Source: Hyphochytrium catenoides (Eukaryota > Protista > Hyphochytriomycota). Taken from it: a stretch of DNA of 50,991 nucleotides. The DNA lies in the NCBI GenBank assembly GCA_900088475.1, contig FLMG01002844.1:1-50991 (forward strand), read 5' to 3'. Shown here one piece after another: positions 15,491 to 24,958 of this stretch; within the stretch, counting starts at the first letter, position 1; every line of letters starts with the position of its first letter. Made by a program: the position numbers and the translations under genes. Below the pieces are notes generated by a model. It saw only the letters and a list, made by a program, of their open reading frames with translations, was not told the DNA's origin and made no database searches.

Positions 15491-18400
15491 TCATTCTCCA
15501 CCCCTTCTCCGCGCCAGAGCACGGGCAAGCTCACTGTTCATGCCGCTATCTGCAGCAACCGTAGCCTTCTCTCCAAACTTTCGAGCGCTACTATCACGAG
15601 ATTTCTATGTAGTAGGGACAAGGAAGAGAGAGCGAGAGCGTGAGAGAAATAGATAGTACACAGAGTAAGGAGAGGAATAGCAACCGTATCTGCCAATGCC
15701 ACAACTCCTTTTTTGCTTGCATCAGGAATGAAGGCGAGAAAAGGTGTCCGCACGGTGTAGAGGAAGAAGACGGTAATGGCGTGAGGGACCTGTTGGGTGC
15801 TAGAGAGGCGCGACTCTCGTTCTGCGGCTTTTTTGGCTTTCTTCTCCGCAACGCGCTGGCGGCGTAGTTCCTCTCTCTTAGCGTCTCTCTGCATTTGTAC
15901 ATGCAAGCTATCAGCTCATAATAAGACAGCAGCCACGCTGTAGTGCAAAGCCTAGGATTGTCTCTGTCTTCCCTCTCTCTATCTTCTCATCCTTACACTA
16001 ACAATCATCGTCGACCTCTTCTTACCATTGCCTGACGGCGCTCGCGCTCCTCTGCAGCTTTTCTCCGCTCTTCTTCCATCTTTTTCCGTCGTATCTTCTC
16101 TCTCTTTCGTCGCGCCCTCACAGCAGACTCTGGTACACCTAGTGAGAGGAAGGCTCTTCTGCATATCATCTTTTCCCAAACCGCAAGGACGAAGAGCTTT
16201 TCTACCTGCACTAGCAGCAACTTGGACTATATCTCCGGCACCGCTGAGGGTGATGTCAAGCTTTTTTCCCGTCTTGTTGAACATTATAGGTCCCGCTGGG
16301 GTGAGCGCTAACTGTGGACAAATCGAATATCAGCTGGTTAGAGCTTCTCTCACATCGTGACATTCTGCTCTCTTCTATTCGAGACCTCTGGTATCGGGTG
16401 CCGTCGCAGCTGTATCTCGTTGCCGAAGTCCACTGTCAGCTCCCTACCGCTTGTCTTCAGCACAGCATCTGATAAAACCCCTAATGGAGAGAGAGATGTC
16501 AGTCAACAAGTAGCTTTCTAACAGTAAGAGGAGCTTGAAAGAGGGAGAAGCTGCCATCGAACCGTAGCTGCATGTGCGGGTGAGCGAAGAAGAGAGAGAC
16601 AGAGGAAGCGGAAGAGAACGAAGCTGGAGAGAGCATGACGAAATATAAAACGAGAGTTGCACAGCACACAGCAAGAGACTGTCATCCTCTGTCGACCTAG
16701 TATTTCTGACTTCTTATCTGTTGAGAGGATCTGATCCTCAAGAACTTCAGTGGAGAAGAACCCAACGACCTCGTCCCAAACTGCAGGAGGACAGACTCAG
16801 ATCGCTGCTTGCAAGGACCGCAAACCATCAAACGAAGGAGGAAGAAGAAGAAGAGGTAACGCGGAGAAGTGACGCGACGCAGAGAAAGGGTACTGGATGA
16901 CACCTCTAACAGGACTATAAAAGCCCTTATCAGGGACGCAGAATGTCTGAGCACAGACGGCATCGCAGAATATCTTCCCCGTGACTCTGCAGTGGTGCCG
17001 ACGCCTGAACATCGTAAAGGGCTGCTGGGTTCCCATGCAGACAGGAGCCTGTAGAGGAGAGAGACGAAGCGGTCACTTTGAAGGGTAAAGGGCCAGTAAG
17101 TAAAGGCTTGAGAAAGATGAAGATTAATCAGCGCTGAAGGAGCGGACAAGACAGGAGGAGCAACCCAATGCACCTGCTTGTTATCGAGCCAGTTCGACGT
17201 GTCAGGCTTCTCCATGCGTTCTGGAACCTTGACGTTTACAATGATGACACTATCTGCCAGCTGGGAGAGCTTCAGACCTTCCACCTCAGAGATGAGGATA
17301 CGACGGCGCAGGAAGACCAATGGTTGAGTCTAGAACATGGTGTCAAAAGAAGAGATGTGCCCAACGTCAGCTCCGATGGTCTATCTAACGCCATGACACT
17401 GCTTTGTTTGTTCTCTCTACTTTGTCTCTCTCTCTCTCTCCCTTCTCTTTGAGTCTCCTTATACATCTCCGTCTCCCCGTCCCTACCCAACTTGCGTTCT
17501 TCGCCTTAGGGTCTGGCGCTGAACGGGGAACGGTCTGCATCAGATAGAGAGCGGAAGGGGTGATGGCCAGCAACCGACATACCCGCCGCGGTGGAGAATT
17601 TGCCTCTTCTCCCTTAACCACTCTGTCAACCTGCAGACAAGGATGGGTTCTTAACAAATGGACGAAGTTTCAGAACTTCTGGTAAGAGTCGCAACGCTGA
17701 CCCAAAAAAGCTCAGTCGAGCGCAGAAATGCAGGCGAGAGAGGGGCTGCTACTCGCAGGATGGGAGGAATAGTCAGAGGCGACTGCAGACCAATGGAAAA
17801 GAAGTGACGGAGAGAGCTGACCGGACCTTGTCAAGAAAGAGAATGCGTTCATCTTCCCCATAGTAGTCAATGATATCTCGCACTGCATCCTTCTCCTCAC
17901 CGTCATGCACATAATCACCGTCAAAAGGTCTGAATATAGAGGCAGCCCGCCTCTCCTTCCTGTCAGAGGGCAAAGCCGAGACGGAAAGAGAAAGGGCTTA
18001 GTAATCGTCCTGCCTCTCACTTCCCTGTGCACGAGCCACTTGATTATTCATGGCATTCGCGCTCTGAACGTCCAATCCTCCCATTTCCTATCTCCATTCT
18101 GTCACTGGCAGCCTCCCATCCAAGCTCCTTTCTGATATCGCCCCACAGTACATATAGGCAGCAGATCCCTTACGAGTGACTGGCATAGAGCTTGGCTATG
18201 CGCTGCTGCAGCAGAAGGTAGTGACGCCGACCAATAAACTTCCTCCACGCGCGCTGGATCCTTGTCACATAGCTTCCGACTGTTTTCTCTCTCAGCCTAA
18301 CAGGAAGGTAGAAGCCCAACAAGGTTGAGATGCAAGTGAGAGTGCTCAAGCGGAGAGAGAGACGCGCAGCCACGTGACCCTTGCACTTTCTTACCTTTCT

Positions 18401-21400
18401 AGGTTGAAGTACGTTTCTGGAGTTCTGATAAAGATCATCGTCTTTCCCAGCTGCACCTCGTGCTCCAACTCAGGCAGAGATTTTGTTGCAGATCTAAGAA
18501 TCGCCTTTGTACCTTTAGGAGCAGGTGAAGTCAGCCCCAATGGAATGGAAAAACCATTCTAGAGTGATTAGGAAGAGAAGAAGGTCGGACTGGAGATAGG
18601 CTAGTGGTAGCGTGAAGCAGGAGTTGGAGAAGCCGAGCGAACAGAGGGGTTTCTCCGAAGCCATGCCCCAAGGTCAGAAGGATCTGAGAGGGAATCCCGG
18701 TTCCGCATTAGCTGCGATGTTAATCAGTCGGACCTCTCTTATCTCCATGTTTCCACTCCGGGTAAGTCTCTTTTGACAGAATACGGAAGCGGTCAAGAAA
18801 CCGTCCATACTCCGTGCGATATGCAAACCCTGCGCGCCGCACCTAGAGCGTCGGAGTTAGTCTTTAGTCGGCTGAACATCTGTCCGTTTCCCAGCTCCGA
18901 CAAGGAAAGCTTCCGGTCTCGTCTTTATCTCACTAAAAGTTGGACTCCATAGCTTCTATCCTACGCTCATGCGACGGCCCTTTTGCTTTCTTGGTCCTGC
19001 GGCGCCTCCTACCTTGATATTCTCCAACAGCCCTAAGTATTGGATTTGGTGCAACACCCTTTGATCGTCGATGACACCTGCTTTCTTCTTCTCGTTACTC
19101 TTGATACATCGCACATAGTGAGGACTGCAGCCCATTAGCGCTGCCACCAACTCGTTGCATTGGGTCCGAATTTTCCACCTGTCAGGATTGTAAATGGGCA
19201 CGAGGCACGGAGGAGGTCAACCTGGGAGGAAAGCCCTTAACTTAGAAGATCCAGACGAGGAGGACGACGATGGAGTGTCCAAGACGACGCAAACGGCCCA
19301 CAAAGCCACCTTGCAAACAGCAGCATTGTAGAGCTTAGTTGCCATCCTCTGTCTTTCTTACCCCGCAGTCTTGGGCATTTGTTTGTCGTTGAGATCCACC
19401 ACTTCGGGATACAAATGCTGCAGCAATTTATTAGAGGATCCCTTGACGACCAAGGTGATATCCTTGGCCAGAAAGTCCTTGAATGGGGAAGGGCATTGGG
19501 ATGGGGCAGGAGGGCGTACTAATGAGCCAGACGTGCTATCGGCTGATGATGCAGTCAGGAGCAACAATAGCATGGTCTAAGGCGGCAGTAAATCCTAATC
19601 CTCTGTGAGAGTACCCGAGGAGTCCCAAAAGAAGAGGCTTCATAGCCGCTTCGGCACCCCGCTTTGCGAAACGATCATCTTATCTCTTACCTTGGTAGCA
19701 TCAGAGAAGCCTGAGATATTGTACTGGACCTGGCCTGCATAGTGGCGGATTTCGAAAACTCTGCCTCTTTTGCCAAAGTGAGGATGAGACCGATGGAAGC
19801 CTGCCACTTTATCTAAAAAGCTGCAAAGCAACATGCGCAAGCCCTTAGACAGTCATATTTGCAAAAGGCTCATGGAAGTCGCAGGTCACGCTGGAGGCAG
19901 AGCTTAATAGCGTAAGAGCCCTACGTGTCGTCAACTCTGTCTCCTCCAAGACTATGAGCTGTCTTTATCGTGTCATCCAGAATGAGGAAGACTCCAGGTG
20001 GCTGGCGGCCTTCGATAAGCTCGCAAACAATCTATGGTAAGTGTAGGGTTAGTTTGGGCAGCAGTGAGAGAAGCGCAAAGCAAAGCTGGGTCCTCTTAAT
20101 GCGCCCTTTGGAGGGACTATAAGAAGAAGGACAAACGATAAGGAAGAAGGGAAGCAAGATTTGCACCTTATTGTTGAAGAACGGGATGGGCTTCCAAGCA
20201 ATGCCCTCCCGGGCATATTCTTCCTGCAGGCGGAAGATCAGTGCACAAAATCATGTCTCGCTTTGACAACTGGCTGGCCCCTCCCTTTTTCCCGCCCATA
20301 CTTTCTACCTTTTAACATATAATCAGCACTAATTACGCATTCACCTGTTCTGCATTGAGCGTTAGCTCTATGAAAATTTGTTGGAGCTTCTCGTTGACAT
20401 AGTTGATGCAAAACTGCTCAAAACCGTTGTTGTCAAAGATCTCAAAGCCATAAATGTCCAGGACGCCTAAATAATGAGTCACTGGAGTTAGTGAAGGTCA
20501 CATCGATGTGTCCTTTAGACTTAGTATCGTAGGTTTACCGATGGAATAAAGCGAATCCTCATTGATCTCTTCTCCCATATCCCTTCTCTTCTCAATATCC
20601 AGCGCACTGTTAACTCTCGCCACCAGGAAGTCAAAGATCCTCTCGTATAGACTCTTTGCCAAACCGTCGCGCGAAGCAGCTGCCTGGATTGGGTTCTGCG
20701 GGACCTGGTAAGTCTCAACCTTTCCTCCGGGGGCCATGGTCTGCAGCGTTCGGCTCGTGAGCGAGGCTGAAAGAGAAGAGGCATCCATTCCCAGGAGGTT
20801 GCAGAAAAGTTGAAGAGAATCTCCTGAGGAAACAGCAGACCCTTCTGCGTCTCCAACCTACCGGCAAACAATCAGGAATGGGTGGGGTGAGACGGGGTAA
20901 GACATGCTAGCATACGATACGAGTAAGCAGAGGAAACCAACAGCAGAGCTGAAGAACAATATCGCTCAGTCGCTGGCTGGTAGGCAACAACAAGTGGCAC
21001 ACAGTTGCTAGTGTAAACAGGCACGATCGCCTCAGTAATCCATGCAAGAGGTCCATTTATCGAGAACGAAGGTTCGTAAGGTCAGAAGTAAGTTGACAAA
21101 GACGGAGGTGAAAGGCAGGCATACCTGTTTTGGACTAAATTTTACGTTTCCAAGGTGTAGGATCGCTGCGATGGCTTGCAAGACGAGTTCCATCTGCTTC
21201 TTCTTTAGACCCACGCTACGCATTGCGTGCAGCGTCTCATTAAATTCCTGGACAAAACATACGATCGCAGAGAAGAGGACGTAAGAGAGAAAGAAAGAGA
21301 TAGGGATGCCATGTGCGTCAGACTCCCTAAGCAGTAGATAACGCTGTATTTGGTGGGAGAGGATAATGGCGGTTAAACAAACGGTCGATAATCTAAAAGT

Positions 21401-23100
21401 CTACCTCGGCATCATCCACTCCTTCTACTTGGTAACAACCGCTCTGGGAAAGGTAGTGGAACTCTTCGTTGCGCTTTAAGAAGAAAGCATCTCTGGCAGG
21501 CAAAACAATAAGATGGACATCAAACCTTATTGATGGAGGCAGATGCCTTCAGTAGTAGGTGAAGTGCCGCACAACAGGAATGAGGGATAAGAGAAGAGAA
21601 TCTGGAAGAGCCTAGCGTGTGAGGCAAAAAGAGAGAGAGAGACAGGGAGAGAGATGAAGGGAAAAGAGCTATCACTACCTAACTTTGGCGGGAGCTCCAG
21701 CCAGAAGCTGGTGAAATATGTGAAAATTCCTCTCTCCTGGTCCTGGTTTCACCACGCGCGACTTCTCTAGCAGGTAGTTTGTCACCTTGCCGCCCTGCGG
21801 ACGGCCAGATGCGTCAAACTTAAGCTCGAAGTACTTTCCGAATCTGCTGCTATTATTGTTCCTCAAAGTCTTTGCATTGCCAAAAGCCTCAAGGAGAGGG
21901 TTGCTGTCTAGAAAGACTCTCTTTACCTGTGATTGAGGGTAGGGCCAAGGGCAAGCGTCAGAGGGAACAAAACCTAGTCACTGCCGAGAGAGAGAGAATA
22001 AAGGGAGGGCGTAACGAAGCAAGAGGAGGCCAAGAGCTGAATATCCACTCAACTAACTTTTTCCACATCCTCTCCACCTCCGCTGATAGAGGCAATGTAG
22101 TTCTGGATTTGCTTTGAAGCTTCAGTTTTCCCAGCTCCACTCTCTCCTGCCATAGTGATGCAGCAGAAAGTCACGAAGATCAGAATCTAATGGATGTGAT
22201 GACGGCGAGCCCGATGGAGCCACAGGCTAACACCGGACTAGGATCCGAGCGTGGTGTTATCAATGGAAAAAGACCATTTGGGAGAAGGCATAAGGCAGAG
22301 GCACTGAGCGGGAGAAAGCTGAGCACTAACGCAGAGGCACTGAGCTGGTCGCCATGACGGGTAGTAGGGAGGAAGTGTCAATAAGGGCACTGTGTTAGGG
22401 CTCCTAACTAGTAGCCTCACCACTAATGATGATGCACTGATTTTCCTCCTCATTTAGCATGGCGCGGTAGGAGGCCTCAGCAATAGCGAACACATGAGGA
22501 GGGCAGTCAATGCGCGCCTTTCTGACGTACTTCTTTATAGTGCGGTCGTCATAGATGGTCAGCCATTTGTACGGATTGACTGCGGATGGTGAAGGTTAGA
22601 GAGTGGACATGGCATTTGACTAGAAAAACATGGGAAAAGGAGTGCAGGAGGAGGTTGCTGCCCTTGGACCGGAAAGAGGCAAAGGAGCACTCATAAGATG
22701 GAAGGGAACGGAGGCGGGGCGGGAGGATCGAGGCCTTCAAGCGCCAGCGATCCAATCGCTCTAACAGAAGGAAACGAGCGCAGTGACATAGCAATTAAAA
22801 TGGTGGACATTCCATTTCATGGAAGGGAAGAGCCAAGAGATAAGCAAAGGAGGATTGAGAGAGATAAGTGCGAGAGAGGATGAGCTAATGAATACCAACG
22901 ACAAGCACGTGTCCGATGAAGGTGTAGATCTGGTCAGCCGCGTGCCTCATTTTTAAATTTTCTAGGATTCCCTTCTCTGACAGCTCTCTGATCAGCACCA
23001 TGTCCTCCACGCCGATCACGGCTCTCTCCACGGCAAAGGACTCATCGTCTCCTTTAGGACCGGCCCTTGGCCTCCCAGTCGTTTTGCTCCTAGAGCCCAT
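15491..23100 (-). CDS. MYO1: Class I myosin: motor, one IQ, TH1 with FYVE-like insert, charged helix, short C-terminal motif; roughly 25+ exons
   Basis: [24 protein letters not shown]-loop [54 protein letters not shown] motif [12 protein letters not shown] and TH1 motif [10 protein letters not shown]. The last exon ends [16 protein letters not shown] at 15491. Confidence 0.93.
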
Positions 23101-23792: not shown

Positions 23793-24958
23793 CTATACGC
23801 CAAGCACCAGAGTGGAGCCCAAGAGCGTGATGGCTCCAAGAAGCATAGCTGCTGGAGTGACGTATTGCGTAACCGCGCTGGACTGACTGTTTGACTGATC
23901 GCTGGTGGATGGGGCCGGAGTGATCTTCTGTGTGAAGAGAGGGAGGCAAGGTTAAAGTTAGAAAAGTTCATCACTCCTTTCCAATTGATGTCCTACCGGA
24001 GCCGTAGCATTCTCTGGGCGGGTGGCTGGCCCAGAAGAGGAAGGTGTTGGGGAGATAGGCCCGCTAGTGCCTCCAGGAGTGGTGTTATCGCTAGGTGGAG
24101 AAGAGGGAGAGAGTCCTGACGTAGGTGTAGGAGAGCTGCTACCGCCATTAGCAGCTAATCGGCTTAGGCCAGTGGTAAACTCTAACTCACTTAGCCCACA
24201 ACATCTGCTGTTGACCTTTGTACAATCATCTCCTGAAGGTCGATCAGCGCTTGCAAGGACTGTTATCACGTCCTTGGTCACTGGGTCATTTTTGATGACG
24301 TCCAGGTTAGGCTGCTGGTCATCATAAAAGACAATATGTCCGTACGGCACACTCCAATAGGCCATGATATTCTTCATCATTTCATTCTTCGCCCGGGGCC
24401 CACACTGATATTGCCTTAGAGTCTTCGACTCTGATTCCTGCCACTCAGAAGTGTCGCTTGCAGGACTCCCTGTGGCTTTCGCAATCAGGTCTACCAACCA
24501 TCTAACAGGGGAAAGAGATCAAGTCAGTTCAAGGACGATTATGCAGGCAAGGAAATCATCATGAGGGCTTACTTGAACTTGCTAGCTTCACCGTTTAGCT
24601 GTCCAGTGCTGCAACCGGGTCCATGGGTTGCAATACTGATCCCATAACCCTTGGAAGCGCAACCTTGAAGAGCCCCTAACGCGAAGGTCCCTTGCACTAG
24701 AGACCGTCCGTTCCCGCCATACGCGTTGTCAACTGCGCTGGTCTTAGCTACGTTTGAACAACCACTTTCCTGTGCCGCAGTAAGAGTTCTATCCACATCA
24801 AAAACACATACATACTGGACGGCGCCAGCTGACGCCAGCTCACGCCGAGGGTGGATATGGAGCCAGTCTTCGGACCCTCGACGAATGGCGCCCTCTAGGG
24901 ATGCCGGACCGAGGGCAAAGAGGCAAAGAAATGCCCCTAGATGGAGACTCTTAACCAT
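23793..24958 (-). CDS. Secreted, probably GPI-anchored HAD-superfamily hydrolase with Ser/Pro/Thr stalk, 3 exons
   Basis: Exons 24958-24573, 24501-23997 and 23927-23793. Contains a signal peptide, HAD motif I CVFDVDRTL, motif II IAT, a motif III Lys (AKNEMM) and motif IV IVFYDD. The last exon encodes KITPAPSTSDQSNSQSSAVTQYVTPAAMLLGAITLLGSTLVLGV*. Confidence 0.82.

Follow-up and report, generated by a model that had tools for sequence, protein, structure and literature searches.

Introduction

FYVE domains, the textbook readers of PI3P, are held to depend on two structural zinc ions. In Trypanosoma brucei, the class I myosin TbMyo1 carries a FYVE domain inserted in the TH1 domain of its tail and is needed for endocytic traffic (PMC2924389). 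Binding of PI3P by the TbMyo1 FYVE domain has been reported as unpublished data (PMC11581428), and the domain has been termed "putative zinc-binding" with no discussion of its cysteines (PMC2924389, PMC11581428). A diatom myosin with a FYVE domain in TH1 is also mentioned in the TbMyo1 paper.

Here, we analyzed a myosin gene on a stretch of 50,991 nucleotides of Hyphochytrium catenoides DNA (assembly GCA_900088475.1, contig FLMG01002844.1), referred to below as the window; the gene lies on the minus strand, as do all features described here, and coordinates are those of the window. Like TbMyo1 and its kinetoplastid orthologues, with which it was compared by description, the gene product joins a class I motor to a short tail in which a FYVE-type domain stands in the middle of TH1 and TH1 then resumes, with a charged C-terminal region after TH1 as in TbMyo1. 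TbMyo1 differs in having a WW domain at the start of its tail (a kinetoplastid trait); Pfam returned no WW match for those exons of the window that were scanned, nor for P0179, a relative of full length. The tail also resembles that of vertebrate myosin-1c (4R8G) in that, as judged from the model of a homologue, a PH-like fold is embedded in TH1, whereas myosin-1c carries no insertion at that loop and bears three IQ motifs.

The FYVE-in-TH1 architecture is therefore known already, and the gene is a further member of that group. What we found no published account of is the cysteine loss described below: neither the literature searched nor the TbMyo1 paper mentions ligand loss in FYVE inserts of myosin TH1 domains, and no study of the relatives from Achlya, Saprolegnia, Aphanomyces, or Oxyrrhis was found in the literature. 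In the databases, these relatives bear automatic domain labels only (TH1, FYVE, or "FYVE zinc finger").

The gene model and its splice junctions

The gene extends over approximately 15497 to 23100 and is divided into more than 20 small exons, as delimited by tblastn and Pfam. Its product combines a motor and an IQ-like motif with a TH1 tail that holds the FYVE-like insert, a basic region, and a C-terminal motif that is conserved. Compared with the window by tblastn, the Achlya hypogyna myosin P0001 and the relative P0179 matched in 16 to 17 collinear pieces at about 55% identity, and the remaining full-length relatives gave the same collinear pattern as P0001. A myosin motor domain with P-loop, switch I, and switch II was recognized: individual exons matched the Pfam Myosin_head profile at 43 to 96 bits, and motor-domain motifs, including a 16-letter run and DIYGFE, could be read in the exon translations. 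The TH1 tail and the names of the relatives point to a class I myosin. Directly upstream of the gene, at 23958 to 24958, are two long open reading frames of 179 and 129 amino acids.

The IQ-like exon region lies at approximately 18167 to 18343 (Pfam IQ, 17.5 bits against a cut-off of 20.3) and is collinear with P0001 residues 693 to 751. The tail begins at approximately 17776 to 17997, which matches Myosin_TH1 positions 1 to 46 at 19.5 bits in Pfam and P0001 residues 736 to 794 by tblastn. The following exon (17487 to 17630), bounded by an AG acceptor and a GT donor, encodes the first strands of the PH-like part, and its translation aligns with the block that stands upstream of the LRRR motif in the relatives. 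After an intron with a purine-rich (GA)n low-complexity run at 17390 to 17470 (CT/GA runs are frequent in the introns of this gene), a further TH1 exon at 17174 to 17329 gives a weak Pfam match to Myosin_TH1 positions 83 to 116; it carries the Trp of the WxxD motif, which reads W-x-x-N in the window, and ends in phase 0 with the residues NKQ.

The FYVE-like exon (16904 to 17048; 145 nt) starts in phase 0, ends in phase 1, and was identified by Pfam FYVE, by alignment to the FYVE domains of Vps27p and EEA1, and by its zinc-ligand positions. It is preceded by a GT-AG intron of 125 nt (17049 to 17173), over whose junction the homologues align gap-free, and followed by a second GT-AG intron of 123 nt (16781 to 16903), set by its splice signals, which contains an in-frame stop codon. 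By alignment with the relatives, the exon at 16697 to 16780 supplies the last FYVE strand, V-W-D-E-V-V-G, equivalent to V-C-D-x-C-x-G, after which TH1 resumes. The next TH1 exon (16400 to 16480, only its start being exact) has an AG acceptor and a fitting phase and is collinear with the relatives. The C-terminal motif of the family is found at 15503 to 15604 (tblastn; P0001 residues 1092 to 1125; 59% identity). This motif, N-S-E-L-A-x-A-L-A-R-R-R, follows a long stretch rich in Lys, Arg, and Glu and is also present in P0014, P0174, and P0175; it is common to the window gene and its Achlya and metagenome relatives.

All four introns inspected, namely the two flanking the FYVE exon and the next two outward, are GT-AG introns with pyrimidine-rich 3' ends. 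The three exons, kept as separate pieces, align gap-free over both junctions with P0001 (residues ~834 to 960) and with 21 other relatives. Homology and splice signals together thus appear to confirm the junctions around the FYVE exon, and they support the splice model of an initial annotation made from the DNA alone, which had placed the junctions near 17173-17049 and 16902-16783. The same annotation had recognized a FYVE-like domain nested inside TH1, and this arrangement is upheld by the exon order, by the alignment of the relatives, and by PH-fold matches on either side of the insert; all of the peptides that it quoted were found where it had put them, on the minus strand.

Since the domain is split over exons and the searches were run with single window exons, the TH1 exons score low one by one, at about 17 to 19.5 bits each against a Myosin_TH1 cut-off of 31.1, while the collinear relatives reach 46 to 58 bits. 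Between 16700 and 17329 one frame stays open for 210 codons over an exon, two introns, and the FYVE exon, so that this region was reported as a single 207-amino-acid open reading frame; it is no real coding unit. A pseudogene was ruled out, given more than 20 collinear exon pieces in stop-free frames and four GT-AG introns. We conclude that the gene is intact and belongs, as a member like any other, to a conserved class I myosin family with a FYVE-type module inserted in TH1.

Zinc-ligand positions of the FYVE-like exon

On its own, the FYVE exon matched the Pfam FYVE profile (PF01363) at 43.3 bits (gathering cut-off 27.8; profile positions 9 to 52 of 67). Its nearest solved structure is the FYVE domain of Vps27p, followed by those of endofin, RUFY1, and EEA1. 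The window domain shares with canonical FYVE domains (Vps27p, 1VFY; EEA1, 1JOC and 1HYI; Hrs, 1DVP) the Pfam match, RRHHCR, the R-V pair, and the Trp of WxxD; it is of equal length, aligns gap-free, and has a PD-G-Y-P-RV-D stretch like that of Vps27p. It departs from them in the metal ligands. Canonical domains have eight ligands for two zinc ions, whereas the window has three in register and its family two that are invariant.

The ligand register was set by alignment to solved FYVE domains and to canonical FYVE proteins among the search matches. In the window, ligand positions 1, 3 (within RRHHCR), and 5 are Cys, and positions 2 and 4 are both Thr. At position 6 a Val is followed directly by a Cys, giving C-x3-C, and Trp and Val occupy positions 7 and 8. 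With only ligands 1, 3, and 5 in register out of the eight zinc-coordinating cysteines that form two cross-braced sites, the domain is FYVE-like and no canonical FYVE zinc finger. The motifs around these positions have fared differently: RRHHCR is intact, RVC keeps its Arg and Val with Trp in place of the Cys, and WxxD keeps its Trp at the canonical distance from Cys 1 with Asn in place of the Asp.

Divided between the two sites, these residues leave the second (pairs 2 and 4) with one ligand in four and the first (pairs 1 and 3) with two in register and one displaced. From the missing ligands we infer that the second zinc site is gone, and probably that it cannot exist, and that the first would be at best a three-thiolate remnant. 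The initial annotation had read the four Cys pairs as CMGT, CRVT, CDAVC, and WDEV, and the gap-free alignment with 22 relatives makes these true positional equivalents. It was also correct that the PI3P-binding core RRHHCR is intact and that the second site is lost, with Thr at ligand 4, Trp at 7, and Val at 8. Its count of four remaining ligands out of eight was close in spirit; strictly, no more than three Cys stand in register, the sixth being displaced. The first site is not intact either (Thr at ligand 2, ligand 6 displaced), and the term "partly zinc-free" in that annotation may therefore understate the loss.

Cysteine depletion across the family

We scanned the FYVE exon against 1.84 billion representative proteins. 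The best match was P0001, with 63 to 64% identity to the window over this exon. Among the best 150 matches, 21 proteins had the pattern of the window: a first pair C-x2-(T/S); RRHHCR-x-(T/S/D)-G, in which ligand 4 is never Cys; no final CxxC in members reaching that far; and R-V-x-D-x-x-(V/I)-G followed by the TH1 continuation. Among members with a source name, the oomycetes are represented by Achlya, Saprolegnia, Thraustotheca, and several Aphanomyces species and the dinoflagellates by Oxyrrhis marina; those that bear no source name are mostly metagenome proteins. The myosins of Achlya hypogyna (OQR90393.1), Saprolegnia diclina (SDRG_11661), and Aphanomyces astaci (H257_06448) and an Oxyrrhis marina MMETSP transcript share both architecture and cysteine depletion with the window gene, at about 55% overall identity to its exons.

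Ligand positions were tabulated over 23 rows, comprising 22 relatives and the three exons of the window. Ligands 1 and 3 are Cys in all 23 rows and are the only invariant Cys ligands. Ligand 2 is Thr (20 rows) or Ser (3 rows), and ligand 4 is Thr (14 rows), Ser (8 rows), or Asp (1 row). Cys is found in 16 of 23 rows at ligand 5, in 17 of 23 one residue after ligand 6, and in none of the 23 at ligands 7 and 8. By comparison, RRHHCR is present in 22 of 23 rows, with RKHHCR in the remaining one; the Arg of RVC is invariant and the place of its Cys is variable. In the window, Asn takes the place of the Asp of WxxD, as it does in 11 of 23 rows. As read from this alignment, the cysteine depletion is a family-wide trait, shared by all 22 aligned relatives, and it is no peculiarity of one gene. 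The alignment with protist myosin I tails that the initial annotation had proposed as a check thus returned the same depletion in 22 relatives, with no gap at the junctions.

The tail alignment of 316 residues contains 14 near-invariant columns, 11 of which fall within the insert of about 60 residues. No other part of the tail is therefore as constrained as the insert, and this speaks against a relic in decay.

Other searches added no members. A word search with the Oxyrrhis tail returned the query itself as sole match, and a scan of metagenome loci with the FYVE exon returned two loci, both unrelated canonical FYVE genes, and no close relative. In the Atlas shape search, clusters with TH1 and clusters with FYVE+PH came up and none with TH1+FYVE, and the Atlas feature search gave ZFYVE21 clusters at 0.78, under the meaningful level.

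Relatives that retain zinc sites

Four metagenome proteins share the TH1 continuation of the depleted family and retain more of the ligands. P0107 has TH1 and a FYVE match of 77 bits with all eight Cys. In P0010, P0015, and P0021, ligands 2 and 5 are lost and the second zinc site is complete; in P0015 the end of a myosin head is present as well.

We placed these proteins in a maximum-likelihood tree of 26 tails, unrooted and with an unresolved backbone, for which the ligand columns were kept in the alignment. P0010, P0015, and P0021 form a clade (support 99/95) that is nested, with moderate support (84/89), among the fully depleted P0055, P0013, and P0040. The oomycete members and P0179 form a clade set apart from these (93/94), and the window is most similar to that clade. 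A constraint that places all rows retaining site 2 together on one side of a branch lowers the log-likelihood by 27 units (AU test, P = 0.021, for a group that was defined after the tree was seen). If regain of three cysteines is excluded, the tree and the AU test together imply that the second site was lost at least twice. These data suggest that loss of the second zinc site occurred more than once.

Predicted fold of the tail

With a homologue taken in place of the window protein, we modeled residues 734 to 1049 of P0001 with AlphaFold2 from an alignment of 25 rows. The model has a mean pLDDT of 87.9 and a pTM of 0.81. As a whole it matches the myosin-1c tail (4R8G; Z 16.4, 2.4 Å over 162 residues), and model residues 144 to 207 match the FYVE domain of EEA1 (1JOC; Z 9.5, 1.3 Å over 62 residues). 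The insert superposes on the FYVE domain of Vps27p (1VFY) at 0.9 Å over 58 columns, and across canonical FYVE domains the predicted fold of the homologue stays within 0.9 to 1.7 Å. These values concern the fold as predicted in a program that models no metal: stability without zinc is outside its reach, and a FYVE fold may follow from the sequence pattern alone.

The matches of ordinary PH domains to the model begin near residue 27, end near residue 236, and so cover either side of the insert, and the module would accordingly sit in a loop of the PH-like core of TH1 in this model. The Pfam matches of the relatives have the same order, with TH1 profile positions 1 to 115 directly before the FYVE match and, in the alignment, TH1 resuming after the insert. 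The structure prediction envisaged in the initial annotation, carried out on the P0001 tail, thus gives a FYVE fold nested in a PH-like TH1 domain.

A candidate mechanism and its alternatives

Our preferred reading, to which we assign a probability of roughly 60%, is that in this family a FYVE-type module in a TH1 loop shed its zinc ligands and kept its phosphoinositide pocket. Under this reading, the second zinc site would no longer exist and the first would be a three-thiolate remnant at best; the fold would be held mainly by its own core and by the clamp that TH1 forms at either end. The head-group pocket for PI3P would still be formed by the invariant W, RRHHCR, and R-V residues, the hydrophobic loop ahead of RRHHCR would enter the bilayer, and the motor would thereby be directed to endosomal membranes rich in PI3P, where the insert would probably work jointly with the basic PH-like face of TH1. 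Like PI3P binding, the dual-lipid targeting suggested in the initial annotation would be a putative function. Such a mechanism fits TbMyo1, with its FYVE domain in TH1 and its part in endocytic traffic. Against it count the use of a homologue for the predicted fold and the chance that the program infers such a fold from the pattern even where the metal-free domain would not adopt it. Moreover, the window has Asn for the Asp of WxxD, and most members of its clade retain Cys 1, Cys 5, and the displaced Cys 6, so one zinc may remain there.

A more far-reaching version of the preferred reading is that the FYVE fold of the family is zinc-independent, that ligands were lost stepwise, from site 1 and then from site 2, the latter more than once, and that the pocket stayed under strong constraint, making the module a natural metal-free reader of PI3P. 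We offer this version tentatively, as an idea with somewhat less than even odds. Nesting in the PH-like TH1 domain possibly replaces the metal as a clamp.

Somewhat more doubtful still is the version of the initial annotation, a reader of PI3P with one zinc, in which site 1 would bind through Cys 1, Cys 5, the displaced Cys 6, and a non-Cys ligand or water. These three Cys are kept by the window, by P0179, and by most oomycete members, and the alignment with Vps27p shows that His can stand in for Cys at ligand 6. However, ligand 2 is Thr or Ser in every member, and the spacing is C-x3-C in place of the canonical C-x2-C. Moreover, Aphanomyces astaci and A. invadans have no displaced Cys and others have no Cys 5, and the domain is equally conserved in these members; for this reason we lean toward the clade of the window having either no zinc or a dispensable one.

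The insert could instead be a degenerate relic without lipid binding, serving only as a structural spacer or a protein-binding knob. We consider this quite improbable. Zinc ligands are normally essential to the FYVE fold, and half of the members have Asn for the Asp of WxxD; nevertheless, RRHHCR, the R of RVC, and the W are the most conserved residues of the tail, from oomycetes to a dinoflagellate.

The intronic VCGPCK stretch

The intron at 16781 to 16903 contains, in another frame, the letters VCGPCK (16808 to 16825), and the initial annotation had named restoration of RVCxxC by splicing into them as an outcome that would overturn its reading. No such restoration is supported. VCGPCK is preceded by GG and not by AG, its frame agrees with neither flanking exon, and translation continued from it runs into a stop ahead of the remaining TH1; the AG dinucleotides present in the intron give no open path. 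Relatives that have the last Cys pair show V-C-D-x-C-x-G exactly where the window has V-W-D-E-V-V-G. WDEV is thus already in the place equivalent to CDxC, so the homologous positions are filled. With no acceptor, the wrong frame, a stop, and WDEV in place, a relic or an alternative exon was ruled out.

VCGPCK does stand in the frame that a phase-1 donor would continue. Given the composition of this 41-codon intron, its phase-compatible frame would contain a VCxxC in about 0.3 to 0.8% of cases, so the match is an unlikely coincidence, noticed after the fact, and we treat it as a chance match outside the protein. A faulty splice model or assembly as the source of the depletion, with the mRNA restoring RVCxxC from VCGPCK, has next to no chance of being right: the low chance expectation favors it, and against it stand the missing AG acceptor, the frame mismatch, the stop downstream, and the relatives, all of which are without the pair and align gap-free against the GT-AG model.

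Implications

We regard the finding as real, conserved, and testable, its function being inferred. The TbMyo1-type tail is widespread in oomycete-related protists and occurs in one dinoflagellate. In this tail, conservation is highest at the putative lipid-binding residues, although six of the eight zinc ligands have been lost. The finding is relevant to the interpretation of PI3P probes and FYVE predictions in protists. Together with the living intermediates that have two zinc sites or one, the family would offer a series on how a zinc finger loses its metal and keeps its job.
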